A stretch of 64,000 bases of DNA from Macrostomum hystrix. Its lineage: Eukaryota > Animalia > Platyhelminthes. Below the pieces are notes generated by a model. That model made no database searches. It was not told where the DNA came from and saw nothing but the letters and a program-made list of their open reading frames with translations. A program made the position numbers and the translations under genes. Shown here piece by piece: positions 1 to 55,214 of the stretch; the first letter of the stretch is position 1, and the number at the start of each line of letters is the position of its first letter. The stretch is from the NCBI GenBank assembly GCA_950097015.1, contig CATNEN010000024.1, positions 1,054,001 to 1,118,000 of the forward strand. The letters run 5' to 3'.

Positions 1-3000
1 GGTGCCGGACACCCGGACATGGTCCGGCCATCTGGCTGAAGCGTTGAACAACGCGATGCTGCCCCAGCCTGGTGCAGTTGTAGCGGCCTTGCTAGAAGAG
101 CTGCTGGTTACAGCCGAGCCAGCCTCAGCAGAAGCCTCTGCCGTTGTCAGCTGCCTAACCAGCATGTCCGGGGAGCCCGGCAGCTCATCGCAGCTGTACT
201 CTGTGCTCACCCGGCTGAGCGGACGCCGGATCGCGGACGCCTTCCGCTGCTGCGTCGAGGCCGGCGCTGAGTCTACGGCTATAAAGCTGCTGCCGCATGT
301 GCCAATCCAGGTAGGTTAATTTTCTCAGACAACAGCAACACCAAAGCACACTGTCAAGGTAAAAAATGCTGCATCAAATGTCGGGCATCAGGGTAGATCT
401 TCACGGCCGTCAGGTAGCAGACCACCTACTCGTAGGTAGACGAACTGCTCAAATTGTGGAAACTATGCGTTGCAGAAAATTGCGGCCTTGATTTCGTCAA
501 GCCTGCAGAGTTCCTCGTGTTGATTAGCAGGCCGACGGTAGCTGCAAGCCTTGCTGTTAAGAGCATTAACAGCCCATTCTAGAATACTCTTCAGTGGAGC
601 ATCGCTATTTGTGACATTTACTAGTGTGTAGCGGGTTGCCGAGTTGGCTTCGCAAACGAGTTCGTGTTTATTTGAGTTCGCAAAAAGGGGTGAGGGCTCT
701 GTGCCCGAGACAAAGAGCCTTATAAAGGCCAGCGCGACTTCTCCATGTCCCCAACCCCACTGAGGATCGCAAACCAATGCGACCGCGCGAGCAGGGGTGA
801 CGCATCCGCCCAGACCGTGGTGTGATGTCTGGGGCCGGCTGTCTGGGGTAGAGTGCACTCTCCGCCACAGAGCTCCCCCCAGCGCTGGCCTACGGTGGCT
901 GCCGGCATCGACGGCTGGGCTGCTGACGGCAAGCTGGTTGCTTTTGCGGCGGAACGCGTGGGGCCTCTGTGGTGCTGGCTGGCTCGTTGGCGGTCAGAGG
1001 AGGGGTGCATTCCGCGGGGTTCCGTGGAGGACGGCCGCGAGGCCGCAGCGCAGGCAAGGGCACTGGACACGTTGGATCAAGCGTCGCTGGCTTCAGCCGG
1101 TCCACGGAGACGTGGTCACGCCGGGTGCCAAGATCTAGCAGGAAAACCTTGGCGCCCCGCTCCAGCACCTTGAATGGGCCATCGTACGGCCTCTGGAGCG
1201 CCGAACGGTGACCATCGCGCCTGACGAAAACGTGCGTGCAGGTATCGAGGGCGGGCGGCCAGGAGTGCGGGCGGTGGCCGTGCTGAGAGGTCGGCGGTGG
1301 GCGGAACGCCCGAACAGCGCTACGCAGGCTGGCAAGGAACTCGCCTTGGCTGCATGAGGGCTGACAGGCCTGTAAGCATTCGCCGGGCACCGTCAGCGGC
1401 GCACCGTAAACCAGCTCGGCTGACGAAACTGCGAAGTCCTCCTTAGGAGCCGTTCGAATGCCTAGAAGCACCCACGGGAGCTCAGCGGTCCAGGCTGGCC
1501 CGGTTAGCCGCGCCATCAAGGAAGCCTTGAGCTGTCTGTGGAATCGCTCGACGAGCCCGTTGGCCTGCGGGTGAAACGCTGTCGTGTGATGGAGCTGCAT
1601 GCCCAGCAGGCGAGACACGTTGGTCCAGAGCTCCGAGGTGAATTGGGCTCCGCGGTCTGATGTGATTTCGCGGGGAACGCCGAAACGGGCGATCCAGTGG
1701 GCGATGAACGAGGAAGCGCAGGTGGCTGCCGAGGTGTCAGATAAAGGGATGGCCTCGGGCCATCGGGTGAAGCGGTCGACCACAGTCAGCAGGTGCGTGA
1801 ACCCCTGCGAGGGTGGCAGAGGGCCCACGAGGTCGATATGCACATGTTCGAAACGCGCTCCTGGCACCGGGATGCTGTCGGGTGTGGTGGCCACGTGTCG
1901 CTGCACCTTGGCTGTCTGGCAAGCGATGCAGGCGCGCGCCCACTGGCCGACGTCGCGGTTCAGGCCGGGCCAGACGAAGCGATCGGCTACCAAGCGGCGG
2001 GTGCTGCGGATTGACGGGTGTGCCAGGCTGTGGATCGCCTCGAACACTGATCGACGGAAAGCTGGCGGCACCAACGGGCGCGGCCGGCCGGTGGAAGTGT
2101 CGCAAAGCAGATCCAATCCTGAGCGCATGGCCACGCGCTTCAGCTGAAGCCCGGAATCTTGCGGCATCGGTTCGCCGAGTTTCTGTGCCTGTGCCATGGC
2201 TGTGTAGTCGACTCCGGGCATCACACTTGCGATTGTGCAGCGGGACAGCGCATCGGCCACGGGATTGTCCTTTCCAGCGACGTGCCGGATGTCGGTGGTG
2301 TACTCTGACACGTAGGCGAGGTGCCGCTGCTGTCGGGCGGACCACGGCTCGGACAGTTTGGCCATGGCTGCGGCGAGTGGCTTGTGGTCGGTGAACGCGG
2401 TAAAAGGGCGGCCTTCCAGGAGGAAACGGAAATGGCGGGTGGCCAGGTAGAGCGCCAAAAACTCGCGGTCGAAAGCGCTGTACTTCTGCTCTGGGGGCCG
2501 CAGTTGCTTACTGAAAAATGCAAGCGGCTTCCACAGGCCGCCGACCCGCTGCTCGAGGACGGCTCCGACGGCCGTTTGCGAGGCGTCAACGGTGAGTGCC
2601 GTGGGCGCCTCCGGGTCAGGGTGCACCAGCATGACTGCGTCGGCCAGGGCTCGCTTTGTGTCCTCGAATGCGTCGGTCAACTCCTGCGTCCACTGCAGTA
2701 GCTTCTCCTTGCCAGCCATTGCGCGATAGATTGGGCGAAGGAGCTGGGCGGCTCGCGGCACGAAACGGTGGTAGAAATTCACCATGCCAGTGAACTCCTG
2801 CAGGCCCTTGACTGTCGTAGGGGGCGCAAATTTGCGTATGGCTTCGACCTTGTCAGGCAATGGCACGGCTCCCTGGCTGCTGATTCTATGGCCCAGGAAG
2901 TCGATTTCGCTACGGCCGAACTGGCATTTGGCCGGGTTGAGCAACAAGCCATTGTCTGCCAGCCGCTGGAATAGGACTCTCAGGTCGGACTGGTGTTGTT

Positions 3001-6000
3001 CCGGGCTGCTGCTTGCTACCAGGAAATCATCGATGTAGGCAAACACGGACGGCAGGTCCTGGCAGATGGAGTCCACGAGCCGCTGGAAAGCCTGGGCCGC
3101 GTTCTTTAGCCCGAAGGGCATTCTGAGGAATTCGAAAAGGCCGAAGGGCGTAATGACGGCCGTCTTGGGAATGTCGGCCTCTGCGACAGGGATCTGGTGG
3201 TATCCGCGCACCAGGTCGACCTTGGAGAAGATGGAGCAACCTGCCAGACGCGCGGAGAAGTCCTGGATGTGCGGTACAGGGTAACGGTCCGGCACCGTTG
3301 CGTCGTTAAGGCGCCGGAAATCGCCGCAAGGCCGCCATCCGCCAGATGACTTCGGCACCATGTGCAACGGAGAAGACCAAGGGCTGCTGGAGCGCCGCAC
3401 GATTCCGAGCTGTTCGAGCGTTCGGAACTCTTCCTTGGCTGCTGCCAGTTTGTCGGGTGGCAGGCGGCGGGCGCGGGCGTGCACCGGTGGACCCTGCGTG
3501 GGTATGTGGTGCTCGATGCCGTGGCGTGGAGTGGCTTTCTTGAAACTCGGCTCGGTGATGCTGGGGAACTCGGCCAGTATCCGGCTGTAGGTGTCGCTGG
3601 CCACGGTTGCGGCGATCTGGGGTGCTGGTCCAGTGCCGGGCAGCAGGTGCACGCTGGCCAGAGAGCTGGCATCAAGGAGGCGGCGGTTAGGCAAATCCAC
3701 CAGCAATCCGTGATGGCGTAGGAAGTCTGCGCCGATCAATGGCCGTGCGACCTCAGCCAACAAAAAGGGCCAAGTACAGGTCTTGAGGCCGATGTCCAGC
3801 GTGATAGTCCGACTGCCGAATGTACGGATGCGCGTGCCGTTGGCGGCGAACAGAGGCGGGCCAGTGGGCTGGTGACGGGTGTCGATGCCGGTGGCTGGAA
3901 AGATGCTGACCTCCGCGCCTGTGTCCACCAGGAAACGTCGGCCTGTGTGCACGTCGGGGATGAGCAGCAGATTGTTGCCGGCCGCCGAGATGGTCAGTGG
4001 CGACCGGCCTGCCCGTTTCCCTGGAAACTGCAGGGCTGCTGGCAACGCCTCGCCTCTGCGCCGAACTTGCGGTGGAAGTGGCATAGGCCGCTTGCGTCGG
4101 TAGACGGGCGCTGCGTTGGGCGCGGCAGCTTATTTCGACCGTTGCCGAAATGGCGTGCCGCGTGCACCTCCGCCTCGCCAGCCAACTGAGCGGATGCAGC
4201 CACCGGCTGGGGCCGGCTGGCCCAGAGCTGGTCAGCGAGCTGGCCGGCCGCCCGAGGGTCCGAAAAATCCGCAGACACCAGCGCCATCCGGATGTCGTTG
4301 GGAAGTTGTTGACGGAAAAGCTCCTCGAACAACAGGCACGGTTTGTGATCGCCTAGCAGCGCCAGCATCTCGTCCATCAGCTCGGATGGGCGCCGGTCTC
4401 CTAGGCCGGAAAGGTTGAGCAGTCGGCTGGCGCGCTGCTGGCGTGTCAGACTAAAGGTACCGAGCAGGCGGGCCTTCAGTCCTTCATACTTGTCGGACTC
4501 CGGAGGACTCTCCAGAACGTCCAGCAGGCGTTCAGCGGTCTGCTGATCCAGGGCGGCGACCAGATGGTAATACTTGGTTTCCTCCTGGGTGATGCCGCGC
4601 AGGAGAAACTGGGCCTCCGCCTGGATGAACCAAGCCCGCGGTTGGGCTGCCCAGAATGTGGGCAGTTTCAGTGCTACCGAGTTTTCGGTTGTAGGGGCCA
4701 TTGGAACGAAATGGCTGCGTCGGGCTCACCAATGTAGCGGGTTGCCGAGTTGGCTTCGCAAACGAGTTCGTGTTTATTTGAGTTCGCAAAAAGGGGTGAG
4801 GGCTCTGTGCCCGAGACAAAGAGCCTTATAAAGGCCAGCGCGACTTCTCCATGTCCCCAACCCCACTGAGGATCGCAAACCAATGCGACCGCGCGAGCAG
4901 GGGTGACGCATCCGCCCAGACCGTGGTGTGATGTCTGGGGCCGGCTGTCTGGGGTAGAGTGCACTCTCCGCCACAAGTGCATATTATCATATAATAGGGG
5001 TAATTTTATAATATCCATTTACACTTAAAAAAAACCTTTTATGAAATAAGAAAACTTTTCTGAAATAATTTTTTGACCCCCCCCAGCCGTCCTCATCGGT
5101 CGTCCAGTGGCTGACAATGGCGTCTGAGCGGGGCCTCCTGCAACTGCTGGCTAGTCTGCTGAGCAGCCGCTGTCTGCACGCATCCGCCGCGGTCAACGCC
5201 GAGGACGCCAGCGGTCGAACGGCTCTGACCGCGGCTTGCCTGGCCGGACAAACCGGCGCGGTGCGGCTGCTGCTGGAGCAGGGCTCGGCAGATCCCGGCC
5301 GGGCTGACCGGGACGGCAGGACCTGCCGACAGCTGCTGCTGCTGTTGCTGGAGAATGGCGGCGGCACGGTGGTGAACTCAGCGACTGTGGCCGAGATTGC
5401 TGCCCTGCTAGACGAAGCGGAAAGCCTGTGAGAAGCAACAAAACTTTGCCCTATGAAGAAAGAAAGTCATGCTTGAAAAGCTATATATTTCCTAAAATAC
5501 TTATTTGACAGAAATTAAAATAACCTGCGTGTTGAATTTCAGCGGCAGCACTCGGTCGGAGCGAACTCAGAGCCAGCAGCTGTACAGCTTCCTGACAAGA
5601 TGCGGCTTCACAGCCAGGCGGGCTGAGCTGCACAATGAGGCCGCTGACTTCCTGCTGCACTGCATTGCCAAGCCATTGGCTGCCAACCATGGCTACCAGA
5701 TCGACTGCCGACTCGTTGGCAGCTTCGCCGAAGGCTGGGGCCCCTCTCTGGTGCAAGCCAACGGTCGGGTGGCCGTTGACTCCGATGTCAACTGGCTACT
5801 GTTTGAACCGGCTGCAAATGGTACGAGCTCTCATTTGTGTCCTGGCCTCAACCTATTCGAGTTATAAAAAAATTGAAAACTCGATGAAAAATGTTTTTTT
5901 TCACAGATTCTGTGCGCCATCTGCAGCAGCCCAGCCGCGAGACCCAAGCGGGTACCCTGGTGCGCGCCGACTGGCAGACGGGCAGTCGGCAACAAACTCC

Positions 6001-7390
6001 CTTCGAGACTGCTCGCATCGCGCAGCTGCTCCGAACTGGTGGCGGCAGCACCGACCGCCTCACCGTCTGTGAGACTCTTGACCTTCCAGCCAGCTTTGCC
6101 AACCAGGAGAGGTGCCTCATGCGCAGCCTTAGCACTGTCCAGGGCCAGGTATTCGTCATCGTAAAGATTATTTTTAAGCGAATGTTGCCAGCAATGGATG
6201 CCGCAGGATTGACTTCGTACCACGCCAAGACCGTTCTGTTCTTCATGCTGGCGCGTCACTCCCGTCGTCAGGCCTGGTGGGAGCCCGAGAATCTGCTACC
6301 GCTAGTGCGGAAAGCGCTCAAACTGACCCTGGAGCTGCTGGAGCTCGACGCCAGGCCGTGTGTCTGCATGCCTCATTTCCTTGCTCAGGATTGTCACCTG
6401 GCCTTCCGAGATCCCTCAGAGGGTACTAAGGCTCGTGTACGCGAAGCGCTAAATGCACTGTGCGGCGATCTCACAAAAATTGATGGTTTTCTGAGAGTTC
6501 AACTGCGCCCAATAATGTCATTGCGCCCGCCGTTTTACTTTCACCCGTACACCCTTCTGCCGGTGGAAGTCAGTTACTCCGAGAAGGCACTAAAGTCTGA
6601 CTACAAGGAAAACTATAGCATCTTCGCCGAAGCGTATTTGTTAGTTCAGCAGTGCCTATTAAACCTGTCGGTTACCAATAATCCGACAGTTATGGTGTCC
6701 AGGTTAGCAAGAATCAGTCGACTGCCACCTTGGTGCAAGTGCGCCCGCGAGTGTCTGTCTATTTTAGCGCACCTGAGCTTCGGCGAAAGACACCGAGCTA
6801 CCGAGTTGTTGACAGCCCTGGCTAAGCAAAGTGTCCAGCGCTGCTGGGACATGGAACGTTGCTTATTTTTTGATGGCCTGCTGTCCAAAGGGTCAGTCGC
6901 AAGCAATGCCTCTTATGTGAACCCAAAAAGCTGCGGTGACTGGGGCTGGCGATTCTGTTTCAGCAACGAAGTTCGTGTAACGCTAGAAAAGCTACCGCAG
7001 TTTACAAAAGAACTACTTCAGCCAAGAAGCGACTCGCTCAACCGGTTATACATAAACTTTCGAAGTATTTCCTGGAGCCTCATGGCAGAGCTCCTGCCGA
7101 AGCACATGGTAGCCCCAGTTGAGTGGTACACCGAAATGAAGTCCGATCCAGATCACCAAGAGCTGCTGACACTGGCCCAGTACAGTGACAGCCCATTGCA
7201 CTTACATTTCTGCTGCGCTATGCTTCAGCAGCTTCGCGAACGATCGCGGCTTGACTTGAACCTCGACATCGCGAGTGTCCGCACTAAGCTAAGCTTCCTA
7301 ACAGGCGGCTCCGACGGCTGGAGCGACGTCAAGATTCGACCCAAGAGAAAAGGATCATCGACCTCTAGAAGTTACAAACTGGAGTTTTAA
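1..7390 (+). CDS. Ankyrin-repeat + Mab-21/cGAS-like (cGLR) nucleotidyltransferase-fold protein, 5' end outside window; exons <1-310, 5087-5427, 5543-5820, 5907-7390
   Basis: Phase-compatible introns: 311-5086 (CAG|GTAGGT..CCCCAG, phase 0), 5428-5542 (CT|GTGAGA..TTTCAG, phase 2), 5821-5906 (G|GTACGA..TCACAG, phase 1). Exon 2 has an ankyrin motif ([31 protein letters not shown]). Exon 3 has GSFAEG..DSDVN. Exon 4 has Mab-21 C-terminal motifs ([35 protein letters not shown]). Confidence 0.78.
627..869 (-). repeat. 3' LTR of Gypsy element 1 (243 bp)
   Basis: Identical by eye to 4733-4975; minus strand has TTTATAA and AATAAA. Confidence 0.96.
890..4021 (-). CDS. pol: Pol (protease-RT-RNase H-integrase) of Gypsy element 1, expressed by -1 frameshift
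   Basis: ORF 890-4084: LVDTGAEVS protease, YIDD RT, DAS..AVL RNase H, H..H..C..C zinc finger, D-D-E integrase core, PYDGPF GPY/F motif; no stops. Confidence 0.96.
3977..4021 (-). promoter_or_regulatory. -1 programmed ribosomal frameshift signal (G GGA AAC + 6 nt + 10-bp hairpin)
   Basis: Heptamer at 4015-4021 is in the gag frame inside the gag/pol overlap; stem GCCGGUCGCC/GGCGGCCGGC with 12-nt loop at 3977-4008. Confidence 0.8.
3994..4701 (-). CDS. gag: Gag of Gypsy element 1
   Basis: 235 aa; KLPTFW..PRAWF..AEAQF N-terminus typical of short Gypsy Gags; C-terminal [18 protein letters not shown] (CHCC). Confidence 0.93.
4718..4731 (-). promoter_or_regulatory. Primer-binding site, tRNA-Trp-like
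   Basis: TGGTGAGCCCGACG one nt after the 5' LTR; complementary to the metazoan tRNA-Trp 3' end as I recall it (CGUCGGGGUCACCA) with one mismatch. Confidence 0.7.
4733..4975 (-). repeat. 5' LTR of Gypsy element 1 (243 bp)
   Basis: Identical by eye to 627-869; adjacent to PBS and gag. Confidence 0.96.
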
Positions 7391-8590
7391 AAGGCTTTCA
7401 GATCACTACATTTAAATGCATTATTAACTATTGCTAGACCTGAAGAGATATGTATAATTCATCAGCTATAATGGACAGTATGAACGAAAATTTATTGCGT
7501 CACACTTCGCAGTGCACATCATATTTTAATTAAATTTAAAGTTCATACTACTCCGAAGTATCGTGAAAATTACCATAACAAATAAATAAATAATGACTAA
7601 ATTTCAAACCAGATATTCGCAGCAATTCAACCACCTTCCTTGTCGAACTCAATCATTATTATAGCTGCTTGTCGACATCAAAAACAACAAAAAAAACATC
7701 ACAACAAGTGTAAACCAGAAAGAAAAATATTCAGATAAATAAAATAAAGAAAAATAACACAAATTAGTTTGCGATGTCAGAAGGGCGAATCTCGAGCAGC
7801 TGCCAGCTTCATGAAGCTCCCAAATCGCAGCACTTAATTGCCCACACTGCACGTCTGGTGCTTGCTGATCCTGGAATTTGCCAGCAGGCCTTCCACGTAA
7901 CGCCGCGTTCTATAGAATAGATACCCTGCCCTCGGCGCAATGGGCCCTGCAGGGTGAGGAGCAAGAGTCCTGCTCGGTCTCTCTGCAGTATGATTCTGCG
8001 CGCACGATGTGTCCTGCTTATAGCTGCAGCCGCCGCCTATACGAAGGGTCTCGCTGGGTGGTCTCAGCCCTGCACGTTGATAGAGGGCCGCTTTTGAGGC
8101 CGGGTAATGGATGCCAAAAGCGGCGTGCAGCAGGCCTGAGTGCGAGGCAAAGTGCAATTGCACCAGAGGGCAATTCTGTCGACATCGTTGTCGAAATTCC
8201 CAACGAATGAGGCGTTTCAAACAAAATGTATCGATTGTTTAACATTAAAAAACTTTCGCATAAAAATCACAGTTTTCTTCCTATAAATTTACTGCAAATA
8301 TTTTAAAGCGCTTATCCAATATTGTGACTAAAAACAGTTCTTTTAGTGTATAATTTGAGGTTTGAGCCCTTGCGGACCTCGCGCTCCCACTTTCAATAAA
8401 CTTGTGCTCCTACTTAAATGAGCCTACCAGTGAATGCTGCTGCGAATCGTTCAAACTTAGCCCTACAGCTAAATGTTTGATTAGAATAATAAACACATTT
8501 AAGCTGAAATCTCGAGTTTTAAGCAATCATTTTCTGATCTGGTCATTACATTTGTCATTAAATTATCAGCAGCCAACAGACAGCTAAACA

Positions 8591-11500
8591 ATGAACAACT
8601 CAGGTTGTATTATCAAGGATTTTATCCCAGGTAATCGCAATATTAGCTACATTATTACTAAACAAAATCGTACGGCGTACTTTATTAAATCATGTTTTTA
8701 GGGAACATAGAATCATACCTTTTAAAGTGTCTAGGCCTATGACATGTTTATAGGGGCCTATCAAACAATGTAGGCATATTGTTTTACCGATAACTTTTTT
8801 AGAATTCAGTTACATTGTCACTTAGAGTAGAAATATGTCATTGAATATTAACGCAATACTAAATGTATTGCTAAAAGTATTACTAACACCATATGGTAAC
8901 TTGGTATTTGGTATCTCATAATTCAAGGGTCCATGTATTGACTATTGTAAACACAACAGACTACAGTGGGACCAAATTGCAGTAGTTTTTTATATCTTAT
9001 TTTATAATATTGCTTTAAGAGCTGCTGATGTCCATGTAATATTTGTTTAAATTCAACTAAAATACTAAAAAGCAAGACTTAAAGAATTTTTAAGAAAATG
9101 TTTTTGCAAAAATAGTAACATAATATTAGTAAGCTGTATTTAAATTATCAAAATATTATTTTGTCTATGTTTTTATTTTATTTTTATTTAGCTTACTTTT
9201 GACTGAGATAAAAGTCTAAGGCAGTTATTTGACTAGTATAAATATCTCAGTGTCAAGATTTTGTTTCTATTATTGCGACAAAACTTGGGCCAATTATATT
9301 CAAATCCACAGCTTACTGCTATTTAGCTATATAGTGTATATATTTCTGAAATTGTATGACTTTTTATTACTAAATTCTTAAAATTTATTTTAATTTTAAT
9401 TTACTTGACATCAGCAGCTCTTGAATCCTTGTTAAAAAACACTTGCTACTGTTTCACTGTAGTCTAGTCCTAGTGCCCTGTGTTGCAGTTTGATTGTGGT
9501 CTCATGGCCGTAGTTTTCAGCCATAATTATGGATACAGTTACAGGAATCTACAGGGTAGGGAAAACTGCCATAATTTGGTTACAGATCATCTTTATTGTT
9601 GACAGGGGCATTCGTAGAACAGTATTTATCTCTAATTATTTGACTGTCATGCTTTAGTCAGGCTTTGAGTTAAACAGACTACCTACTGCTTAATAAAAAT
9701 GTAAATATCAGCAACAAGACTACAATTTCTCCAGATCAAAATTGACCTAGTATTGATTTTGTATTTCTATGACAGTTTTTTTCATTTTAATTTCTGGTTC
9801 AATAGTCATTCATATATATATATATTTTATAGGTGCAACTGAGAATGCATCAAATTGCTTTAGCTGCAACAGTCAAGCCACAGTGCAATGCATACAGTGC
9901 CGCAACATTCTTTTCTGCAGAAACTGCTTTGACAAGGTTAGTTTTTTGTGTATGGCCTATAGCTTCATCCATTATATTAACATTTCAGACCTCAGATTTG
10001 AGAAATTCTTAGTTCTTTATGAAATTTTACAGTCCCACAGAATGCAGGGCATTAATCATAGCCAAGTGGAGCCATTAGTCATTACTCCACTGCTGCAGCC
10101 AGTTAAACAGCCCGTCTGCTATGTGGCTGGTCATTCTACTGCTGAAAAATTCTGTCTCGATTGCGCTAATCAGTTGTGCTCAAAATGCAGCCACTCTGCT
10201 GAGCATGCCGGGCATTCCTTGTGCGACTTCGGCCAGGCCAATATTCACCTGCTCAACTGGCTGCTGGGTATTGGTGACTCGTTGAATAATCTGGCTAGCC
10301 GCCTGGGCGATTGCGAGCAGGCCCTACAAACTGAAGCTCTTAAGTAAGTCTATACTGTCCTCTCTCCCCAGCATATATTGTCTTCTCTTCCCTGTCTATG
10401 CTGTCCACTCTCCCCAGCATATATTGTCTTCTCTTCCCTGTCTATGCTGTCCACTCTCCCCAGCATATATTGTCTTCTCTTCCCTGTCTATGCTGTCCAC
10501 TCTCCCCAGCATATATTGTCTTCTCTTCCCTCTCGTCCATACAGTCTAATGTCCATACTGTCTATTGTCCATACTGTCTATTGTCCATACTGTCTATTGT
10601 CCGCTGTCCAAACAGTCTATTGTCCGCTGTCCATACAGTCTATTGTCCGCTGTCCATACAGTCTATTGTCCCCTGTCCATACAGTCAATTGTACCTGTCT
10701 TCTGCATAAGCTTTATACACCCTGACTATCACCAGACTGCAGTCCGAAGCAAGGCACAACATCGAGGCTGCTGTGCGGGCGGACTTTGATGCGTTACGAG
10801 CCCGCTTACTAGCCGCCGAGCGCCAGACTGTCAGCCGCTTAGTCGAGGACGGCGTCCGGAGGCCCCTAGAGAATCAGCGCAGTCGCATATTGAATGAATT
10901 GCACCAGTGCGCCAATTGGTTGCAGCCTTTATCTTTGTCTTTGAAAGCGCTGCGCGCTGCTGACAGCAACACCTTCGCCAGATGGTGCCCTAACAGGCCA
11001 TTCGACTATGCGAAACTAACACAGTTGCTAGGCAATCTGGCCAGCGAGCCCGCCTGTCTGGCTACCGGGGCCAGTTCGCCGGTTATCGCATTGAATCGCG
11101 ATCCGACTAGCCAGCCGACAGACGCTGGACACTATTCCATAGCCCGTCCGCCTAGTCTGACAGCCGGCCCACTGGCTGCTTTGGATCCGAATTTGCTGAC
11201 ACAATTGCTGTCACCGAATCTGACAGCTGAAATCTTTGGCTTCGGCAGTTCAGATCCGGCTCAGTCACTAGCCCGACTGCCATCGCCCATCCTGCAGCCG
11301 GCTATTCAGCAGTTGGACACTGTGCAATTACCTGAACTGGCTCCTCTGTCAACTGGAGACGCTGTTACTCCTGTCTGTATAAACTCACCCTACGATATCT
11401 GGGTAGTTCGCTTCAATGAGCTTGACTTGGTAAAGAAACTACAAGAGTTGTGTTGCCATGCGGTTGCCAATTATCAATTAGCCGCTATTAGCGCAGACAG

Positions 11501-14500
11501 TTTGCGCCCGGGGGACTGGGTCCTGAGCCGCTACAAGACCGACTCAGACTGGTGCCGGGCCATTGTTGACCGGCTGATCTCCGGGCAGTGCGACTTGAAC
11601 TTTCCAGACTACGGCAGTTCGGTTAGCAATGTGCCTGTTGAGTCTTTGTTACAGATTCCTCCAGGCCTGTGCCAGATGCGGCCGTTGGCTCACCGAATTC
11701 GACTAGACGGTGTTAGGCCGAGGCGCAACAATCCGAATGACGGCCCGGCCGATCAGTGGAGCTCCGCGGCAATACTGGCTCTGCAAAAAATTCTCCTAAC
11801 TGACAAGTGCTTGTCTGGCGATATAATAGTGCGGGTTGTGTCCAATCAGCCGCGTGAGGTCCTGGTTGATTTGTTGATTCGCACCATACTGCACGACTGC
11901 GACCTGCGCTACTTGTCTGTGCGAGAGATGCTCATCTTTGCTGAGTTGGCCTGCTACACTATTCCATATCTGCACAATAGGGAGGCTAGCAATGAGTTGG
12001 TGGATGCGCAGGCACCTAGGCTGTTTATGCGGCCGGCCAGTGTCATTAAAGGTCATCGCTTTTTTGGCAACGTTTCCGCCTACTATTCGCCATACGAGTT
12101 CTACGTGTTCCGCTGTAATAAAGGCGCCGATACAGATGTATTTATTAATATGCATGACAAGCTTCAGGTAAGCTGCCTTTTTATTTGTAACTTGCAACTT
12201 TAAAACCCCTTCTGGGAGCACAAGCACAAATTCTCGGTGCAATCAATCCCCACATTTAGCAAGCTATAATAACAATTTACGCTGATATTTCCTTAGGGCA
12301 ATGAGCTCATTACACGAATACCATCACAAATGTCCCCCCAGCAATGGAGATCCAATGTCCCCCGCTAACAGAATAGAACCAATGCCCACCCAGCAACAGA
12401 GAACAATGTCCCCCAGCAGCAGAAAACCAATGTCCCCCCTAACAGAATAGAACCAATGCCCACCCAGCAACAGAGAACAATGTCCCCCAGCAACAAAGAA
12501 CAATGTCCCCCAGCAGCAGTAAACCAATGTCCCCCCTAACAGAATAGAACTTATGCCTACCCAGCAACAGAGAACAATGTCCCTCAGCAGCAGAGATCCA
12601 ATGTCCCCCCCAAACAGAATAGAATCAATGCCCACCCAGCAACAGAGAACAATGTCCCCCAGCAACAGAGAACCAATGTCCCCCCAAACAGAATAGAATC
12701 AATGCCCACCCAGCAACAGAGAACAATGTCCCCCAGCAACAGAGAACAATGTCCCCCAGCAGCAGTAAACCAATGTCCCCCCTAACAGAATAGAACTTAT
12801 GCCTACCCAGCAACAGAGAACAATGTCCCCCAGGAATAGAGATCCAATGTCCCCCCTACCCAAGAGAAAAAATCGACAGGAGGGGAGAGAGAAGAGACAC
12901 GTGAGAAATCAGACAGAGGAAGAGATAAAACCATGGAGAGATTAGAAATTATATAAGACAAGTTAGAGATTAGACATGGGAAGGCGTTGGAGCTCGGAAG
13001 TGTTTTGTATTATTTAATAGTAGGTAGCCATTTATTAGTACTATAAATATTGCTTTTCTTCAGACCTTCTGCATCGGCGATAGCAATGGCGACTACACTG
13101 TGAAGCACCCGGTGTCAAATCTGCCAGTTGCGGCCAGGTACTCAGTTGACGGTAATTGGTATCGCGGAATTATCGAGTCCTACTCACCAGACGGTGTTCA
13201 CATATTATTCACCGACTATGGCAACAGGGAGGTGCACAAGGACGCCAGTTGCATCAAGTATCTGACTAAGCGATTTTATCAGCCGCATTCCATGTGCTTT
13301 AGATGCAGCATGTTCGGAGTTGCTGCCACTGATGATGTCACGCCTAGGACAAAGTGAGTGGTTGCTATGCTGCCAACAGCCCTAATCTTACCAAGAACAG
13401 CCATGTTATTAAATTCTGGTATCTGACACCGCCAACCATCCCAGATCCCCAGTTTGACACCGCCAACCATCCCAGATCCCCAGTTTGACACCGCCAACCA
13501 TCCCAGATCCCCAGTTTGACACCGCCAACCATCCCAGATCCCCAGTTTGACACCGCCAACCATCCCAGATCCCCAGTTTGACACCGCCAACCATCCCAGA
13601 TCCCCAGTTTGACACCGCCAACCATCCCAGATCCCCAGTTTGACACCGCCAACCATCCCAGATCCCCAGTTTGACACCGCCAACCATCCCAGATCCCCAG
13701 TTTGACACCAAACTATCCCAGATCCCCAGTTTGACCTTCCAACCATCCCAGATCCCCAGTTTGACCTTCCAACCATCCCAGATCCCCAGTTTGACCTTCC
13801 AACCATCCCAGATCCCCAGTTTGACACCATCCCAGATCCCCAGTTTGACACCATCCCAGATCCCCAGTTTGACACCATCCCAGATCCCCAGTTTGACCTT
13901 CCAACCATCCCAGATCCCCAGTTTGACACCATCCCAGATCCCCAGTTTGACACCATCCCAGATCCCCAGTTTGACACCATCCCAGATCCCCAGTTTGACC
14001 TTCCAACCATCCCAGATCCCCAGTTTGACCTTCCAACCATCCCAGATCCCCAGTTTGACCTTCCAACCATCCCAGATCCCCAGTTTGACCTTCCAACCAT
14101 CCCAGATCCCCAGTTTGACCTTCCAACCATCCCAGATCCCCAGTTTGACCTTCCAACCATCCCAGATCCCCAGTTTGACCTTCCAACCATCCCAGATCCC
14201 CAGTTTGACCTTCCAACCATCCCAGATCCCCAGTTTGACACCATCCCAGATCCCCAGTTTGACACCATCCCAGATCCCCAGTTTGACACCATCCCAGATC
14301 CCCAGTTTGACCTTCCAACCATCCCAGATCCCCAGTTTGACCTTCCAACCATCCCAGATCCCCAGTTTGACCTTCCAACCATCCCAGATCCCCAGTTTGA
14401 CACCATCCCAGATCCCCAGTTTGACACCATCCCAGATCCTTAGTTTGACACCATCCCAGATCCCCAGTTTGACACCATCCCAGATCCCCAGTTTGACACC

Positions 14501-17500
14501 ATCCCAGATCCCCAGTTTGACACCATCCCAGATCCTTAGTTTGACACCATCCCAGATCCCCAGTTTGACACCATCCCAGATCCCCAGTTTGACACCATCC
14601 CAGATCCCCAGTTTGACACCATCCCAGATCCCCAGTTTGACACCATCCCAGATCCCCAGTTTGACACCATCCCAGATCCTTAGTTTGACACCATCCCAGA
14701 TCCCCAGTTTGACACCATCCCAGATCCTTAGTTTGACACCATCCCAGATCCCCAGTTTGACACCATCCCAGATCCCCAGTTTGACACCATCCCAGATCCT
14801 TAGTTTGACACCATCCCAGATCCCCAGTTTGACACCATCCCAGATCCTTAGTTTGACACCATCCCAGATCCCCAGTTTGACACCATCCCAGATCCCCAGT
14901 TTGACACCGCCACCCATCCCAGATCCCCATTTTGACCTTCCAACCATCCAAAGATCCCCAGTTTGACCTTCCAACCATCCAAAGATCCCCAGTTTGACCT
15001 TCCAACCATCCAAAGATCCCCAGTTTGACCTTCCAACCATCCCAGATCCCCAGTTTGACACCAAACTATCCCAGATCCCCAGTTTGACTTTCCAACCATC
15101 CCAGATCTCCAGTTTGACACCAAACTATCCCAGATCCCCAGTTTGACCTTCCAACCATCCCAGATCCCCAGTTTGACACCATCCCAGATCCCCAGTTTGA
15201 CACCATCCCAGATCCCCAGTTTGACACCATCCCAGATCCCCAGTTTGACACCGCCACCCATCCCAGATCCCCAGTTTGACCTTCCAACCATCTAAAGATC
15301 CCCAGTTTGACCTTCCAACCATCCAAAGATCCCCAGTTTGACCTTCCAACCATCCAAAGATCCCTAGTTTGACCTTCCAACCATCCCAGATCCCCAGTTT
15401 GACACCAAACTATCCCAGATCCCCAGTTTGACCTTCCAACCATCTAAAGATCCCCAGTTTGACCTTCCAACCATCCAAAGATCCCCAGTTTGACCTTCCA
15501 ACCATCCAAAGATCCCCAGTTTGACCTTCCAACCATCCCAGATCCCCAGTTTGACACCAAACTATCCCAGATCCCCAGTTTGACTTTCCAACCATCCCAG
15601 ATCTCCAGTTTGACACCAAACTATCCCAGATCCCCAGTTTGACACCAAACTATCCCAGATCCCCAGTTTGACACCAAACTATCCCAGATCCCCAGTTTGA
15701 CCTGCCAACCATCCCAGATTCCTAGTGTTTCTCCTCAACCTCCGTGGGCTAAATTAGTCCCCTGTCTGCAAATGCAGGTCGCGGCACAAACAGCTGCAGG
15801 ACATGCTCCACAATGCCGAAGGGTTCCTATTTCTTTGCATGGACACGCCGACAGTCGCATCTAATGTAGCTAACACAGCTGGCGACAGCAACAGCAACAT
15901 TAGCGTCCTGACTGTGCCAGTTGGCGTCTACCACACTAATTCTCCCATCTGTGTGAATATTCGCCTGTATGACGACGGAGTCTATCCGGACATGCCAACC
16001 GAGGCGCTGGTCCGTCTGGTGAAGGAGTCGCCGCACCAACAGCAGCCAATCAGATCGCGCTACGTCCGTTTAGACGTTCGCACAGGCGAAGTTGCTGTAC
16101 AGCCGCGCGGCCAGCCTTCGGTTCGCGGCGGAGCTCGGGCTAAAGCTGCTCTGCAGGCGGCCGCCAACTCGTCCGACTCAGAGTCTCGCTCGGACACGCC
16201 AGGGCCACCCGGCTGCGAGCCAGCTGCCGCGGCGACGCCAGCTTCTTCGTGTACACCTTCGGATGCTGAACAGCGAGATGATTGCAAACTATTGGAGCCC
16301 TGGCTAGCTAGAGCCCTATTGTCCAAGGAGTTGGATTTTGCCACTTGCACCGTAACTAGCGTTGTTAATCCCGGACTGTTCTACATCAGACTCGAAAACG
16401 ATATTGGCCGTCTGGCAGCTGTTCAACTTGAGAAGCGATTGGAGTCTTTCACTCCGCGACGCGAAGGTCAGCTGCTTCAACCGTTGTCACCTGATGCTCC
16501 GCCTGACACTGTAGCCTGCATTCGACTGCCTAACCTAGTGTGGTATCGGTGCCGAGTGCTCAAACGAAACAGAGACAGCGACAACGGATTGGAGATCTGC
16601 AACCTGCTGCTCATTGACTCCGGGTAAGAGACCAACTGGTGGGAATTCTTTAGCCCAATCTGATGTAAGATTCCATAGCCACAGTATGAAGGGTAAGATT
16701 CCATAGCCACAGTCTGAAGAGTGAGATTCCATAGCCACAGTCTGAAGGGTGAGATTCCATAGCCACAGTCTGAAGAGTGAGATTCCATAGCCACAGTCTG
16801 AAGGGTGAGATTCCATAGCCACAGTCTGAAGAGTGAGATTCCATAGCCACAGTCTGAAGGGTAAGATTCCATAGCCACAGTCTGAAGGGTAAGATTCCAT
16901 AGCCACAGTATGAAGGGTGAGATTCCATAGCCACAGTCTGAAGGGTGAGATTCCATAGCCACAGTCTGAAGGGTGAGATTCCATAGCCACAGTCTGAAGG
17001 GTAAGATTCCATAGCCACAGTCTGAAGGGTAAGATTCCATAGCCACAGCCTGAAGGGTAAGATTCCATAGCCACAGTCTGAAGGGTGAGATTCCATTGCA
17101 ATTTTGTTATTAGTGATGAAATTAGAATTTATGAATCAAAGACATCCTCGCGTCATTCAGCACAGAGTACAAGGCCGCGGCCAGCAGCGTGTTTGCCATC
17201 GACGATCAACAGCTGGCCGCTGCGGCACCGCTGGCCGCTCCGTGCCGACTCTACGGCGTGGCACCAGCCGGCGGGCAGCGATGGACCCGCACTGCGGCCG
17301 ACAAGATGATAGAGATCATTTCTAAGCGCGAGAATTTCGCAGTCATGTGTACCCTGGTCCCAGCCCACTCCTCCGATGCCTCGGCCGGCGCCGATGCTGT
17401 TGACCTACTGTTGCTCAACAGCTCCAACCAGTACGACCGTTTGAGCAACATGCTCCGACTAGCTGGTGTCGCGCTGCGCCACGCTGAGCCAGTCCCACCC

Positions 17501-41000: not shown

Positions 41001-44000
41001 GAACTGACAGTGTGGGATGAGAACTGACAGTGTGGGATGAGAACTGATAGTGTGGGATGAGAACTGACAGTGTGGGATGAGAACTGACAGTGTGGGATGA
41101 GAACTGACAGTGTGGACTAAGGCAGAGAGACTGCGACTTAGAGTTGACGAAGATTTACAGCGATTGATTTATTGACTCACGAGTTAAATAGCAATCAGTG
41201 CCAAGGTGTAAAAGTGAGAGAGAAAGGCATGCACGCGGTTGATGTACATTAGACACCCAGAGAAGTGAACGCATATGTACGATGCATTGCAACACACTAC
41301 AATCCTCCCACGCAAAGAAAAGAGAAGACTCGAAGGAAATAAATAAATTCAAAAAGAATAAAAACGCAGAAAGTGATTGGTGCAACTTAAGCAATATTAA
41401 GACAGTCCATGAATGAGTTCAGCGCAGCCATTCAATCAAAAGTTCAACCCGGCACATATCGATCAACCGGCATCCGCCTCCGCACCGGGTAGCGCCACTG
41501 GGGCAGCTCGTCCGCAGCGTCTCCGCCGCCGTGCAGCTCGTGCGCGAAGGGCGGCTGCTCGAAACGCTCGACGTCGGGTGCCGGCAGGAACAGCGGCCGA
41601 AGGCGGTTTACGTTCACTCTGCGCGTCTTGCCATTCTTGCCGATCTCGACCACCAGATTGCGCTGGGACAGCACCCGCCAGCCGGGGTCCCAGTACGGCG
41701 CCAGCTTGGAGCCCCTCAGCTCGATGCGCAGCAGCACCTCGTCGCCCTGGCCGAATCTGCGCAGCTGCCCGGCTGACCTGTTGTAGTCGCTCTGCTGCTC
41801 GCCAGCCGCCTGCACCAGGTGCTCCTCGACAAACTCTCGAATGCGCAGCAGGTCGGCCTCCAGCTTGTCTGCGTAGGTCCGCACGTCGTAGAACCGCCTG
41901 GGCTGCTGGCTGAGGACTGGCAGACAAGGGTCACGCCCGGTGAAGACCTTCAGCGGTGGCAGTCGCGTTGAGCAGTGCACTCGCGAGTTGTAGGACAGCA
42001 GGATCAGCGGCAGCTTGTCCTCCCACTCGCTCTCTCGCTCGGTGAAGCACCTGAGTAGTTGCAGCACGGACTTGTTTCCCGACTCGGCCAGTCCGTTTCC
42101 TTTCGGATTGTACGCTGTGGTTCTTGTCTTGGTGACTCCCAGACCGCACAGAGTGTCTTGAAAGAGCTGGCTCTCGAAATTCGGGCCTTGGTCCGAGTGG
42201 ATGACTCGAGGCAGTCCAGCCTGGGAGCAGATTGAAAGGAAGGCGCGAGCCGTAGTCTGGGCCGTCTGGTCTGGTAACGCCACAGCCGTCAGGTACTTGG
42301 AAAATTGGTCCTGAGCTACCAGCAGGTAATGGTTGCCGCGTGATGATGGTGCCACCTTGACGATGTCGATGGCCACCGAGTCCCATGGCGATCCGATAGG
42401 CAGCTCTCCGAGTGGCGCCTTGGGCTGCGAGCCTGCCTTCTTCTCCTGGCAGACGGCGCAGCTCTGGCAGTGCTGCAGGACATCCTCAGCCATGCCCGGC
42501 CAGTAGGCAGTCAGCTTGAGCGTGCGGTAGCATTTCTTGGCACCGAAGTGGCCTCCCAGACCTTCGTGAGCGTCTGCTAGGAACTGGTGTCGTAGAAATG
42601 CCGGCACCACTGGAACTTCCCTCAGTCCGTCCAGGTCGTTGAACTTGCGGGAGAGAACTCCGTCATCATTCAGCTTCAGCTTCCTCCAGATTCTGCTCAG
42701 CTGCTTCAGCGGTCCTGACCGCCATCTTGGAGGCACGTCTGGCTCGTTGACGATCGCTTGAATCACCTGACTAAGCTCTGGATCTTGCCGCTGAGCAGTT
42801 TTGAGCTCTTCCGAGCCGATTTCTGCTGTCAGTTGAGTCGCTGCAATTTCCGGGGCGTGCAGCCTGGACAGCGCGTCGGCATCAGAATTCTCCACACCTC
42901 TGCGGTACTTGACGGTGAAGTCGAACTCTTGGAGCAGCAGCCGCCAGCGACCCAGCCTACCATAGCTATCGATTCTCTGGGAATCGATGTAGGTGAGCGG
43001 GCAGTGATCCGTGTGCACCGTGAAATGCTTGCCAAGCAAGTAATGCCGGAAGACTTTGAAAGCGTGCAGGATGGCCAGACACTCCTTCTCTGTTGCCGAG
43101 TACTTTTTCTCCGCCGAGTTGAACGCCCTGCTCGAAAACTCGATCACTGCATCGCCTTGCTTCAGGATTGCACCGACCCCACTGCCGCTGGCATCCGTGA
43201 AGACAGCGAACTCCTTGGAAAAGTCCGGGTTCACCAGGATCGGAGGACTCATCAGGCAGATCTTGAGCTCGTCGAAGGCAGCTTGGCACTCTGCAGTCCA
43301 CTCAAACGCCACGCCCTTGCCAGTCAGGTGGTGAAGTGGTGCAGCGATGGCAGAGAAGTTGGCAACATGGCGGCGGTACTGGTTGCACAGGCCGATAAAC
43401 TGGCGGATCTCCTTGACTGACCTCGGCTCCTTCCACTGCTGAATCGCCTCCAGCTTCTCTTTGCTTGGCTGAGCTCCCTCCTTTGAATAGCGCATGCCGA
43501 GGAAAGTCACTTCAGGCACCGCGATCTTGCACTTGGAGCCTCTCAGTGTCAGTCCGGCTGCTCGGACACGCTGAAGTGCCTCTCGCAGTTGCAGCAAATG
43601 CTCCTTCCTGGTCTTTGAGAAGCACAGGCTGTCATCGAAAAACGTGAAGACGAAGTCACAGCCATTGAAAACTTTGGACATAAGCATGCAGAACGTGCTG
43701 GGGCCACCTGACAGGCCTTGAGGCATTCTCTTAAATTGGTATAGCGGCATCCCTGGTCCAGGGCTAAAGGCCGTCTTCTGTCTGTCTTCTTCAGCCAGAG
43801 GGATCTGGAAGTAACCTCCATTGAGATCCAGCACTGAGAACACCGTGCTGCCCGCGATTCGATCTCGTGCCTCCTCCATTAGCGGAATTCCTTGCGCCGA
43901 CCGAATCGTCTTCTTGTTGAGCTCTCTGTAGTCGATGGTCAGCCGCAGACCGCCGTCCTTCTTGGTCACGTACACCGGTGGAGCCACGTACGGACTCTCG

Positions 44001-47000
44001 CTCAGTTCGATCACGTCGTTCTCCAGCAGCTCCTGAATCAGCAGCTCCGCCTTCTCCCGGTAGTGCACGGGCATTCGGCGCGGTGGGACACGAACTGGCA
44101 CCTCATCAGCGAGAACAATTCGATGCTGCTGGAGATGCGTAAGTCCCGGCTTCTTCTTGAACACGTCCTTGAACTCCATCAGCAGTCGCTGAACTTCGAG
44201 GTCATCGGTGGTTGGCAGCTCAAAATCCACGCAGCTGAACTCGGGCACGAGAGCATCCTCGATGTCAACTTGGTCGTCCGTCTCACTCTGGAACCTTGCA
44301 CTGCAGATACGACCAGCAGCTGCAGGGTTGGCCTTGAAGTACAGCTGCAAACGGTGCTTGCCGATGAAGTCGATCCCGACGATGACAGGACAAACCAAAT
44401 CGGACACCACGTAGAACAAATGCAGCGCTGTCACTTTCCCGACTGTGAGCGGCAACTCGATCTGCCACTCGATGCTGATTGGCTGCTTGTTCACCGAGTG
44501 CAGCTGCACTCCGGCTGAAGTTGCGCGGCTGAGCTGCGATTTCGTCAGAATGCTGGAGTCGACCAGTGAGCACTGGCTGCCGGTGTCTAAAAGCGCCTTT
44601 ACACTTCTACCATCAAGCTTGCACTCAAACTGCGAAAGTCGGTCGGGCGTAACGCTGCATCCACTGAAGACCCCGCCGACTGCGAGCGCTGGCCCCGGAA
44701 CCTGCGCTGGTGAACCCGCAGTTACTGCTGGCCGAGGTGGCGGGCCCGCCCACCCCAGCCTCTGGCGTTTCCCGACTGCTGCCGCCGGCTGTAGCAGTCC
44801 TTGGCGATGTGGCCGGTTTTGTGGCAGTTGTAGCAGACGATATCGGATCTCGGTCGGTGTGGCCTTGCTGTACTGCTGCTTCTCACTCCACAGGCTGCCA
44901 GCTGCTCCAGCTGGGTGCTCAATGTACTCACTGAGGCCTGCAGACTCTGCACTGTGTCCCGCAGCTCCTGAACTTCGCTGGACTGGCTCTGCCGAGGCTG
45001 TACCGCAGCTGCTTGCGTTGCTGCTGGATTGTGCTGCATCAGTAGCTGAGCCTTTTCAAGCGCTTGCACTGAGGTCTTGATGTTAGTGTCTGCTCGAATC
45101 TGCCAGCCCACGGAGTCTGGCAGGCCACAGATGAACTGATGAAACAGCAGGGCTTCTCGAGCATCCACATCGACCACGGCAGAGCTCTGCAGCAGTTTCT
45201 TCAACTCGTACAGGTACATGCGTGGAGTCTCACTTGCCAAAATTCTCCTCGCCTTGAACGCCTCCATGACGGCGAAGTGCTCTCGGTCCGGGTGGAAAGC
45301 ATTCTCCAGTGCTCCAGTAACTTTGCCGAATTCTGCCTGATCGGCTGCAGACAGTTCCAAATAGACGACAAGGGCCTCGCCGTCTAGAAAAGTTGCCAGT
45401 CGCTCCGCCTTGCAAGCGTCCCACTTGTTCACTTTGGCACAAACTTCAAAACGCTGCAGCCATTCTTTAAAGTTGCCTGCACTGAATACTCTGGGCAGCG
45501 CTGCACTAGCTTTCTCAGCCATTGTGGAAACCACGCTCTGCTACCACTGTGTGGACTAAGGCAGAGAGACTGCGACTTAGAGTTGACGAAGATTTACAGC
45601 GATTTATTTATTGACTCACGAGTTAAATAGCAATCAGTGCCAAGGTGTAAAAGTGAGAGAGAAAGGCATGCACGCGGTTGATGTACATTAGACACCCAGA
45701 GAAGTGAACGCATATGTACGATGCATTGCAACACACTACACAGTGTGGGATGAGAACTGACAGTGTGGGATCAGAACTGACAGTGTGGGATCAGAACTGA
45801 CAGTGTGGGATGAGAACTGACAGTGTGGGATCAGAACTGACAGTGTGGGATCAGAACTGACAGTATGGGATCAGAACTGACAGTGTGGGATCAGAACTGA
45901 CAGTGTGGGATGAGAACTGACGGTGTGGGATCAGAACGTACAGTGATTTGTTGCTGTAGGAAAGAATAAATATGAAAAGTTATCTGCAATCATTCCTTTT
46001 TAAAGTGCTAAGAAATTCAATTGTTTTACAAGTCAGTGAACTATGGCTAAAAAATACAAGCTATAGTAGGTGGAAACATAGGACTCAATAATCTTCTAAA
46101 AAATGTGCGACTTTCCGATTGCATAAAAAGCAATCTTCAAAATTTACCCATCGAGGTGCGTAGGTAAAAATTTAGGCTTGAAACGGAAACGCGACGAAGA
46201 ATAGAGGACTAGATTTTGAGTACTACGACTCATAGAATGCTGAGCATTTGTACATCGACTGAGGCAACACGGGTGAGAAGATGACTTATGGTTGTATATA
46301 AAAACGCGGATCAGTTGATTGTTTTAACCATTCCTCGACGGGACAATAAAGTGAAGGGAACAAAGGCAGTAAGGAGCTATTTTTAGCCTGAATGCAACTG
46401 TCTGGCACATTAACTAGTGATTGGGGCGCCAGCATTGGACCTTAGCTGCTATCATGTCTATGGCATAAACTATCTGGGGCCTAGACTGCTTTTGGTCAAA
46501 AAGTTCTGTAGCCTAAATTGTCTATGGCCGAAACGTCTATGGCCTAAACTGCCAACTGTCTATGGCTCCAAATATATATGGCCCAAGCTTTCTCGTATGA
46601 CCCAGATGTCTATACCCTGAATTGTCAATGGTACAAACTAAAAATACTTCTAGGTAAAAACTTTGACCCACCAAAAACGTAAACTCGCCAAACCCGACAA
46701 ACTAGATGCATTTGAATCTAGGCAAAAATAAACATGCAAAAGTTACTAATAGACAGTGTATGTGCAGATTTATCGAACAAGGAGATTAAAATGGTAAGCA
46801 TGCAGAACTGAATACTACACACTAAAAAGACAGTTTTGGTAAAGCTATAGTTTTGCCGCACATAATTTTACCATCGATTGTATCCAGCGAATTGTACTGA
46901 ATTCTTGATGCCATATTTTCTTAAATTTTGGGCAGAGCGAGACTCGGTTACTTGGAGTAAAAAAGCTGAGTTTTTTTGCAAATGCTACATCTTAGAATCT

Positions 47001-54321: not shown

Positions 54322-54356
<35 letters not shown>

Positions 54357-55177: not shown

Positions 55178-55214
<37 letters not shown>

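Follow-up and report, generated by a model that had tools for sequence, protein, structure and literature searches.

An ankyrin stub and a cGAS-like domain joined in one gene of a Macrostomum-type flatworm

Exons and transcripts of the gene

A 64,000-nucleotide stretch of DNA from the flatworm Macrostomum hystrix (assembly GCA_950097015.1, contig CATNEN010000024.1, positions 1,054,001 to 1,118,000 of the forward strand; here called the window and numbered from its first letter) carries a real, expressed gene of four exons in which an ankyrin stub is joined to a cGAS-like domain. The gene lies on the plus strand, in DNA that is eukaryotic in character with short and AT-rich introns. Its only close homologue, the one protein returned by a word-index protein search with the last exon, is BOX15_Mlig014043g1 of Macrostomum lignano (845 amino acids; P0001 hereafter), which is colinear with the window gene across the predicted splice junctions. 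Exon A (2-310) is partial, as it runs off the window start, and encodes a degenerate ankyrin-like N-terminal region that tblastn aligned with P0001 residues 44-149 (49% identity, E value 6e-19). Exon B (5087-5427), which is covered by spliced contigs, codes for ankyrin repeats, about two according to Pfam, and is 67% identical to P0001 residues 148-261. Exon C (5543-5820; 72% identity to residues 262-349) provides the N-terminal part of a cGAS-like nucleotidyltransferase (NTase) lobe, as recognised in a family alignment of 80 segments. It comprises the spine helix, GS (5718-5723), EGW (5730-5738), the first Asp of the acid pair (5784-5786) and, at the site of the second Asp, an Asn (5790-5792). 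Exon D (65% identity) starts with a shortened linker in place of most of the NTase beta-sheet (5907-6091), as apparent from alignment gaps and from the structure model of P0001. This linker is followed by the SF..E motif (6092-6109), the first element of a Mab-21_C-like helix bundle (6092-6505) that is indicated by a sub-cutoff match to Pfam Mab-21_C, the family profile and the P0001 model. The remainder of exon D (6506-7390) is a family-specific C-terminal domain of about 290 residues, recognised by family-conserved motifs and closed by the stop codon TAA at 7388-7390. The 3' untranslated region reaches the limit of the contigs (7391-7573), which end at 7439, 7517 and 7573.

The exon junctions follow from spliced contigs of three public runs (X2, X3 and X4), which match the exons with at least 99% identity; the runs belong to one study of one organism, and the library type is absent from the record. 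Intron 2 (5428-5542; 115 nucleotides, GT..AG) begins with the donor GTGAGA at 5428-5433 and ends with the acceptor CAG at 5540-5542, after which exon C resumes in phase at 5543 with the divided Leu codon CT/C. Intron 3 (5821-5906; 86 nucleotides, GT..AG) has its donor at 5821 and its acceptor at 5904-5906. Contigs of all three runs skip both introns exactly and show the joints 5427->5543, with one contig in each run, and 5820->5907. A single contig (X4 record 18) spans three exons, matching 5337-5427, 5543-5819 and 5906-6711. Since none of the contigs listed for X2-X4 lies across either intron, the runs behave as RNA. Because the contigs splice at both joints, the TGA at 5429-5431, an apparent stop of the ankyrin reading frame, is intronic, and the ankyrin and cGAS-like parts share one mRNA. 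The initial annotation had proposed from the letters alone that this TGA lies within a GTGAGA donor and that an in-phase splice to the Mab-21 exons yields one protein, a fusion of ankyrins with a cGAS-like receptor (cGLR); this is what the contigs show. The joined transcripts rule out a separate Mab-21 mRNA with the ankyrin transcript ending at 5431, as well as a lack of expression. High-coverage contigs of other transcripts match only 5332-5350 and 5709-5741 and then diverge; these short matches are probably unrelated or paralogous transcripts and not alternative splicing of the gene.

The 5' limit of the gene had to be revised. Position 5087, previously regarded as the start of the gene with ATG 5117 as the start of the protein, is a splice acceptor, and the gene begins further upstream with exon A. 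Two contigs stop matching at 5083 and extend 333-406 nucleotides 5' of this position into sequence that is absent from 4700-5082. The overlap of four nucleotides at the break, CCAG, fits the end of exon A, whose frame is open up to CAG/GTAGGT with the donor GT at 311-312, and P0001 has an exon boundary at the same place. Intron 1 spans 311-5086 and holds an antisense long terminal repeat (LTR) retrotransposon (627-4975).

Family, acidic residues and the shortened catalytic lobe

At its own locus P0001 is likewise divided into four exons, whose boundaries fall at identical residues, and a B-box/Tudor gene follows it (L001 24819-29043), in the same position as in the window. On account of this exon structure and the shared neighbour, we identify P0001 as the orthologue of the gene in a second species, at a syntenic locus. 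Its introns measure 1.3-3.7 kb, compared with 86-115 nucleotides in the window gene. As the family we regard the HMMER relatives of P0001, which were collected in an exhaustive search of representative proteins with the cGAS-like and C-terminal part of the orthologue (P0001:250-845). This search gave 97 relatives at E<=1e-3, 64 at <=1e-10 and 16 at <=1e-30, and the best paralogues reach E values of 2e-69 to 1e-63. By source names or accessions, 18 of the 20 members that were looked up belong to M. lignano; of the remaining two, one is a bivalve protein with the name cyclic GMP-AMP synthase and one stems from a metagenome bin. Typically, family members consist of ankyrin repeats (up to 12-13 Pfam Ank matches), a cGAS-like domain and the C-terminal domain of about 290 residues. 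With small variants, the window gene carries all characteristic elements of the family: the ankyrins, the GF..RA spine, GS..EGWGNSL, QGQLF..K, YHAKT and the C-terminal motifs, which throughout the family are FHPF, LPD.A..ARE, AW.FCF and Y.NF. Two family groups of M. lignano (P0008/P0108 and P0014) add a C-terminal caspase (Peptidase_C14) domain. Judging from sequence, these members would link the family to cell-death or effector signalling, with a fusion artefact of the gene models as a further possibility.

Exon B passes the cutoff for Ank_2 (PF12796; 31.5 bits compared with 27.3, E 2.8e-7) and matches Ank with an E value of 5e-5, and P0001 residues 105-238 match the ankyrin region directly upstream of the cGLR domain in the paralogues. 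In Pfam, exon C matched no family, PF03281 (Mab-21) had no match in exon C or D, and PF20266 (Mab-21_C) remained below its cutoff, with 19.0 bits for exon D (cutoff 24.1, E 0.0016) and 18.2 bits for P0001. A single-sequence phmmer search of the PDB sequences with P0001:250-845 found nothing up to an E value of 10; only the family profile reached Sp-cGLR1 (8gjy, E 4e-8) and cGAS (E 2e-6), and it also matched MAB21L1 (E 3e-3). The C-terminal domain of about 290 residues belongs to no Pfam family in the window exon D, P0001 or the paralogues. It is mostly modelled with a predicted local distance difference test score (pLDDT) above 90 in P0001 and in the canonical paralogue P0021. Its fold was seen only within whole-model comparisons, where the NTase domain dominates the match lists; there, a mollusc Mab-21 cluster aligns to residues 12-601 of the paralogue model (TM 0.60) and includes the C-terminal domain by fold.

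The family consensus around the active site reads VGS..EGWGNSL..L.GR....S-D-I-D, followed after about 55 residues by RPAxDxV, CC.YP and PCHvV.AA.PG..g.qLRVSTtFLER. Over the 47 rows for which columns were counted, the two acids of S-D-I-D are Asp in 43 and 42 rows, and the Asp of RPAxDxV is conserved in 38. In the model of P0021 (pLDDT 94) the latter Asp sits within strand 143-152, as expected for a third carboxylate, and we therefore take it as the third carboxylate of the family. The window gene and P0001 have retained the GS..EGW motif and the spine helix. Their acid pair, however, departs from the family consensus and reads S-D-V-N in the window and S-N-V-N in P0001. The register that the initial annotation had given to SDVN is thus correct, and the GS..EG motif it had pointed out is present. 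Two alignments, one of them a profile alignment, leave a gap at the RPAxDxV strand in the window and P0001, whereas a third (MAFFT) places VRxDW under it. In the window, only the Asp of VRADW (5969-5971) comes into question as a remnant of the third acid, and it follows D-V-N-W by just 29 residues. The earlier statement that no third-carboxylate strand is evident agrees with two alignments and with the low-confidence model, which shows no strand there. Published cGLRs conform to the motif h[QT]GS - X8-20 - [DE]h[DE]h - X50-90 - h[DE]h (PMC9980059). The window sequence departs from it with LVGS - X20 - D-V-N-W and A-D-W at 29 residues, and the orthologue with N-V-N.

We also considered other assignments of the acids. 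A triad made of the D-S-D immediately upstream as the acid pair and of the L-D-L before PASF as the third acid was rejected, since the family pair is the D-I-D of S-D-I-D. LDLPASF was likewise rejected as the third-acid strand because it aligns with the WRLSFS-type strand of cGAS. Among the 46 family rows with an N-terminal lobe the triad is intact in 37 and degenerate in nine. The loss is thus specific to certain lineages. The replacement D-x-N-W, i.e. second Asp to Asn followed by Trp, recurs in separate members (P0008, P0030, P0077, the window gene and P0001 in alignment A2, where P0001 reads N-V-N), and P0008 and P0030 have likewise lost the third acid.

The lobe that should carry these residues is small. 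Between the Asn at 5790-5792 and the Ser of SF..E lie 71 residues, in agreement with the initial estimate of about 70, and the only intron in this region is the 86-nucleotide intron 3. For human cGAS we take the counterpart to be about 150 residues, a figure adopted from the initial annotation. A closely equivalent span, from the position of the second acid up to the residue that precedes the Glu of SF..E, comprises 76 residues in P0001, about 107 in the nearest paralogues and 122 in the family median. By alignment, the NTase lobe is shortened by about 50 residues, apparently including the strand that bears the third carboxylate in the paralogues. Only the N-terminal third of the core, with the spine, GS and the first two strands, is recognisable. 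The remainder is deleted or unalignable, and the helix bundle is clearly homologous.

For structural comparisons P0001:250-845 stood in for the joined window protein. Its AlphaFold2 (AF2) model (pLDDT 83, predicted template modelling score 0.85) has an NTase lobe with two strands only. The model is of low confidence at its residues 110-136 and 151-164, and the linker stretch has a pLDDT below 50 and no strands; the low confidence arises because the alignment is only two sequences deep in this short region. Foldseek matched the model to MAB21L1, cGAS, MB21D2 and Sp-cGLR1 over 120-180 columns with E values of 6e-3 to 0.2. The predicted homology of the orthologue to cGLR/CD-NTase enzymes is thus recognisable, with a Foldseek E value of only 6e-3. 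In VIA-align the model superposes on MB21D2 with Z 13.9 (227 residues, root mean square deviation (rmsd) 4.3) and on cGAS (160-521) with Z 13.4 (240 residues, rmsd 5.0). The canonical paralogue (P0021:538-1146), whose model has the full NTase sheet, gave higher similarities, i.e. Foldseek E 8e-8 with cGAS and Cv-cGLR1 over 355-415 columns and VIA-align Z 20.1 with cGAS (272 residues, rmsd 3.5). A search with the P0021 model that was independent of Foldseek returned cGLRs first, then MiD49, bacterial CD-NTases and OAS1. The same range of cGAS is spanned by 287 model residues in P0001 compared with 335 in P0021. The family alignment, the spacing and the orthologue model all bear out that the acid triad is degenerate and the NTase lobe reduced, as the initial annotation had it.

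Selection, phylogeny and genomic surroundings

The reading frames are intact across the four exons in both species. The ratio of nonsynonymous to synonymous divergence (dN/dS), determined exon by exon between the window gene and P0001 with NG86, is 0.40 for exon A, 0.15 for exon B and 0.27 for exon C; within exon D it is 0.31 for the first 60 codons (the short linker), 0.15 for the helix bundle and 0.11 for the C-terminal domain. Since the values range from 0.11 to 0.40 in every exon, the gene is constrained by purifying selection and not a pseudogene. The strongest constraint lies on the helix bundle and the C-terminal domain, not on the N-terminus. A quick IQ-TREE analysis pairs the window gene with P0001 as sisters (SH-aLRT 100), and the stem that leads to the pair is long, at 1.07 changes per column. 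Both are nested in a clade (SH-aLRT 97) with P0002-P0005, P0008 and others, of which P0002-P0005 have intact triads. In the same tree the degenerate triads have at least four independent origins. The long stem together with the low dN/dS is in keeping with rapid change at the time of a loss of catalysis and constraint thereafter.

The LTR retrotransposon in intron 1 is complete and lies on the minus strand. Its LTRs (627-869 and 4733-4975) have 243 nucleotides each, are 100% identical and have TG..CA ends, and AGTG flanks the element on both sides (623-626 and 4976-4979). Its open reading frames (ORFs), also on the minus strand, encode a gag-like DUF7041 protein (3994-4701) and reverse transcriptase, RNase H and integrase (890-4084). 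The element looks like a very recent insertion, and its LTR is covered by RNA-type contigs. Downstream of the gene there are B-box and Tudor-domain ORFs at 9769-10347, 10773-12203 and 15803-16627. A second long ORF of 1021 amino acids on the minus strand (41444-44509) with reverse transcriptase, RNase H and integrase represents another LTR-type retroelement. Three overlapping ORFs of more than 1000 amino acids occupy all three plus-strand frames at 53311-56637, and 54001-56000 shows an extreme strand skew (GC skew -0.8, AT skew -0.9). The tract 53311-56637 is probably a low-complexity or satellite-like repeat.

Possible roles and relation to known systems

From these observations we propose, with reasonable though not strong confidence, that the gene is a conserved non-catalytic cGLR paralogue whose helix bundle and tail mediate its action, be it as regulator, decoy or adaptor. 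The gene is a diverged member of the Macrostomum ankyrin-cGLR family, expressed from four exons. Of the family architecture its protein still has the C-terminal domain and the Mab-21 helix bundle, the GS loop and the cGAS-type spine helix, together with a short stub of ankyrins. Its second catalytic Asp is lost (in the M. lignano orthologue both are), and so are about 50 residues from the NTase lobe, apparently with the third-carboxylate strand among them. Because of the loss of the acids and of this strand, the protein most likely cannot make a cyclic nucleotide signal. Catalysis has thus most likely been abandoned, and a role as regulator or adaptor is probable; protein contacts of the helix bundle and tail could be the mode of action, within a network of catalytically intact paralogues. 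A pseudo-enzyme, as the initial annotation suggested, is the best fit to the data. Its further suggestion, sensing by way of the ankyrins, has little in its favour in the window copy, which has about two repeats compared with up to 12-13 in paralogues and in which constraint is highest in the helix bundle and the C-terminal domain. A narrower proposal, that the orthologous pair is a natural enzyme-less ankyrin-cGLR receptor kept by selection in which the helix bundle and the C-terminal domain form a signalling or regulatory module, is one we make only tentatively and hold to be rather doubtful. If it is true, the protein could tune or antagonise active paralogues or signal without a cyclic nucleotide.

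Some points weigh against the main proposal of a conserved non-catalytic paralogue. Three acids of the window protein (D at 5778-5780, 5784-5786 and 5969-5971) might conceivably combine into a triad if the register is shifted, and VRxDWQTG is conserved between both orthologues. The strand in the shortened region is likely absent, but it is judged so from a low-confidence model two sequences deep, and the fold of the window protein is judged via its orthologue. Enzymatic inactivity itself is predicted from residues and models. The dS values of 0.8-2.3 are near saturation, which makes dN/dS rough, with all values well under 1, and the RNA evidence stems entirely from the one study whose record omits the library type. 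The protein might instead be a still-active nucleotidyltransferase that uses D-S-D (5778-5786) and the Asp of VRADW on a minimal NTase lobe. In its favour, V-D-S-D-V-N offers an alternating D-x-D two residues upstream of the family pair, one MAFFT alignment sets VRADW under the third-acid strand, and the GS and EGW motifs are kept. The upstream acid position is, however, not conserved in the family, where D, E, G, N, K, R, Q and A all occur, and the family alignment rejects the shifted register. The candidate third Asp falls short of the 50-90 residues of the published motif (PMC9980059), the profile alignment has a gap at its strand and no strand is modelled there. The orthologue reads D-S-N-V-N and has no acid pair in any register; for this reason catalysis cannot be the function common to both orthologues. 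We consider an active enzyme very unlikely.

The same losses could mark a decaying gene, an expressed but functionless remnant on its way to a pseudogene. Lost catalytic residues, deletions in the core, a short and degenerate ankyrin array, a young retrotransposon in intron 1 and the fast turnover of a family in which degenerate triads arose at least four times would all suit such a fate. Nevertheless, both species have an intact frame over four exons and share intron positions and synteny, and dN/dS has stayed at 0.11-0.40 across a divergence of dS about 1 or more. Moreover, the transcripts of three samples are correctly spliced, and the retrotransposon is intronic and antisense, which together render decay highly improbable. 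Apart from these two scenarios, the protein may be a non-catalytic ligand sensor rather than a decoy, one that binds nucleic acid or a nucleotide via the GS loop and the spine and signals through the C-terminal domain. MiD51 binds ADP and MAB21L1 binds CTP, and both are among the structural matches, as is MiD49. Consistent with a sensor, GS..EGW and the spine helix have been preserved, constraint is highest in the tail, and the caspase domain of some members (P0008, P0014) would tie the family to effector signalling. However, the NTase lobe contributes half of the nucleotide pocket, and most of this lobe is absent or disordered in the orthologue model. We regard a ligand sensor as unlikely.

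The initial annotation had seen in this locus a candidate for an undescribed system. This view cannot be maintained, because the gene belongs, as a diverged member, to a large Macrostomum ankyrin-cGLR family, and both family members and ankyrin fusions are already on record: Li et al. 2023 describe cGLRs that carry ankyrin or TPR modules, and their survey catalogued and cloned M. lignano members (PMC9980059). The screen table in their supplement lists M. lignano proteins, the species name occurs ten times in the file, and a protein listed there shows the motifs of the window family on comparison with the consensus; Macrostomum appears only in the supplement and not in the main text (PMC9980059). 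A literature search for Macrostomum together with cGAS, STING or cGLR gave no paper with both among the ranked matches. What is new is limited to one variant, in which a copy shared by two orthologues is under constraint although its NTase lobe is truncated and the enzyme probably dead, and its value is limited as the family and the ankyrin fusion have been catalogued and non-catalytic proteins of the Mab-21 fold are known. Even so, a paralogue that is conserved, spliced and expressed in two flatworm species despite the loss of its acid pair and of much of the NTase sheet would be a candidate for a cGLR-derived regulator or adaptor, in which the unannotated C-terminal domain is the part kept by selection. 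In general, cGLRs are regarded as enzymes that produce a nucleotide signal. Since Macrostomum lignano is amenable to RNA interference and transgenesis, the question can be tested.

Among known systems, the animal cGLRs, including ankyrin-fused ones, share the Mab-21/cGAS fold of both lobes with the window gene. Similarity to cGAS and Cv-cGLR1 amounts to Z 19-20 for the canonical paralogue, compared with Z 13.4-13.9 to cGAS and MB21D2 for the orthologue model. The N-terminal ankyrin fusion is likewise common to the window gene and the cGLR design named in PMC9980059. In contrast to cGLRs, the window gene has Asn for the second Asp and the orthologue has Asn for both; a clear counterpart of the third-acid strand is lacking, and an extra C-terminal domain of about 290 residues is present. 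Compared with the rest of the family, the NTase lobe is shortened by about 50 residues, and compared with human cGAS by about 80. MAB21L1/MAB21L2 and MB21D2, proteins of the Mab-21 fold with uncertain or absent activity, are top structural matches to the orthologue model; they differ by a full-size NTase sheet and the lack of ankyrins and of a long C-terminal domain, and the sequence likeness of MAB21L1 to the family is marginal (profile E 0.003). MiD49 and MiD51 are mitochondrial dynamics proteins that serve as catalytically inactive adaptors of the NTase fold. They have the same fold, with Z 12.9 between MiD51 and the orthologue model and Z 14.5 between MiD49 and the paralogue model, and a comparable use without catalysis, but they are membrane-anchored vertebrate proteins from another branch of the fold whose sequence homology is undetectable here. 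The shrimp proteins LvMab21-1/2/3 are invertebrate immune proteins related to Mab21 and cGLRs that are reported to bind and activate a kinase without nucleic-acid binding or cGAMP synthesis (PMC12928593). In contrast to the window gene they lack an ankyrin fusion, and no core deletion is reported for them. By analogy, the window gene may play a role akin to that of MiD49/51 or the shrimp Mab21 proteins, in which the same fold acts without catalysis.

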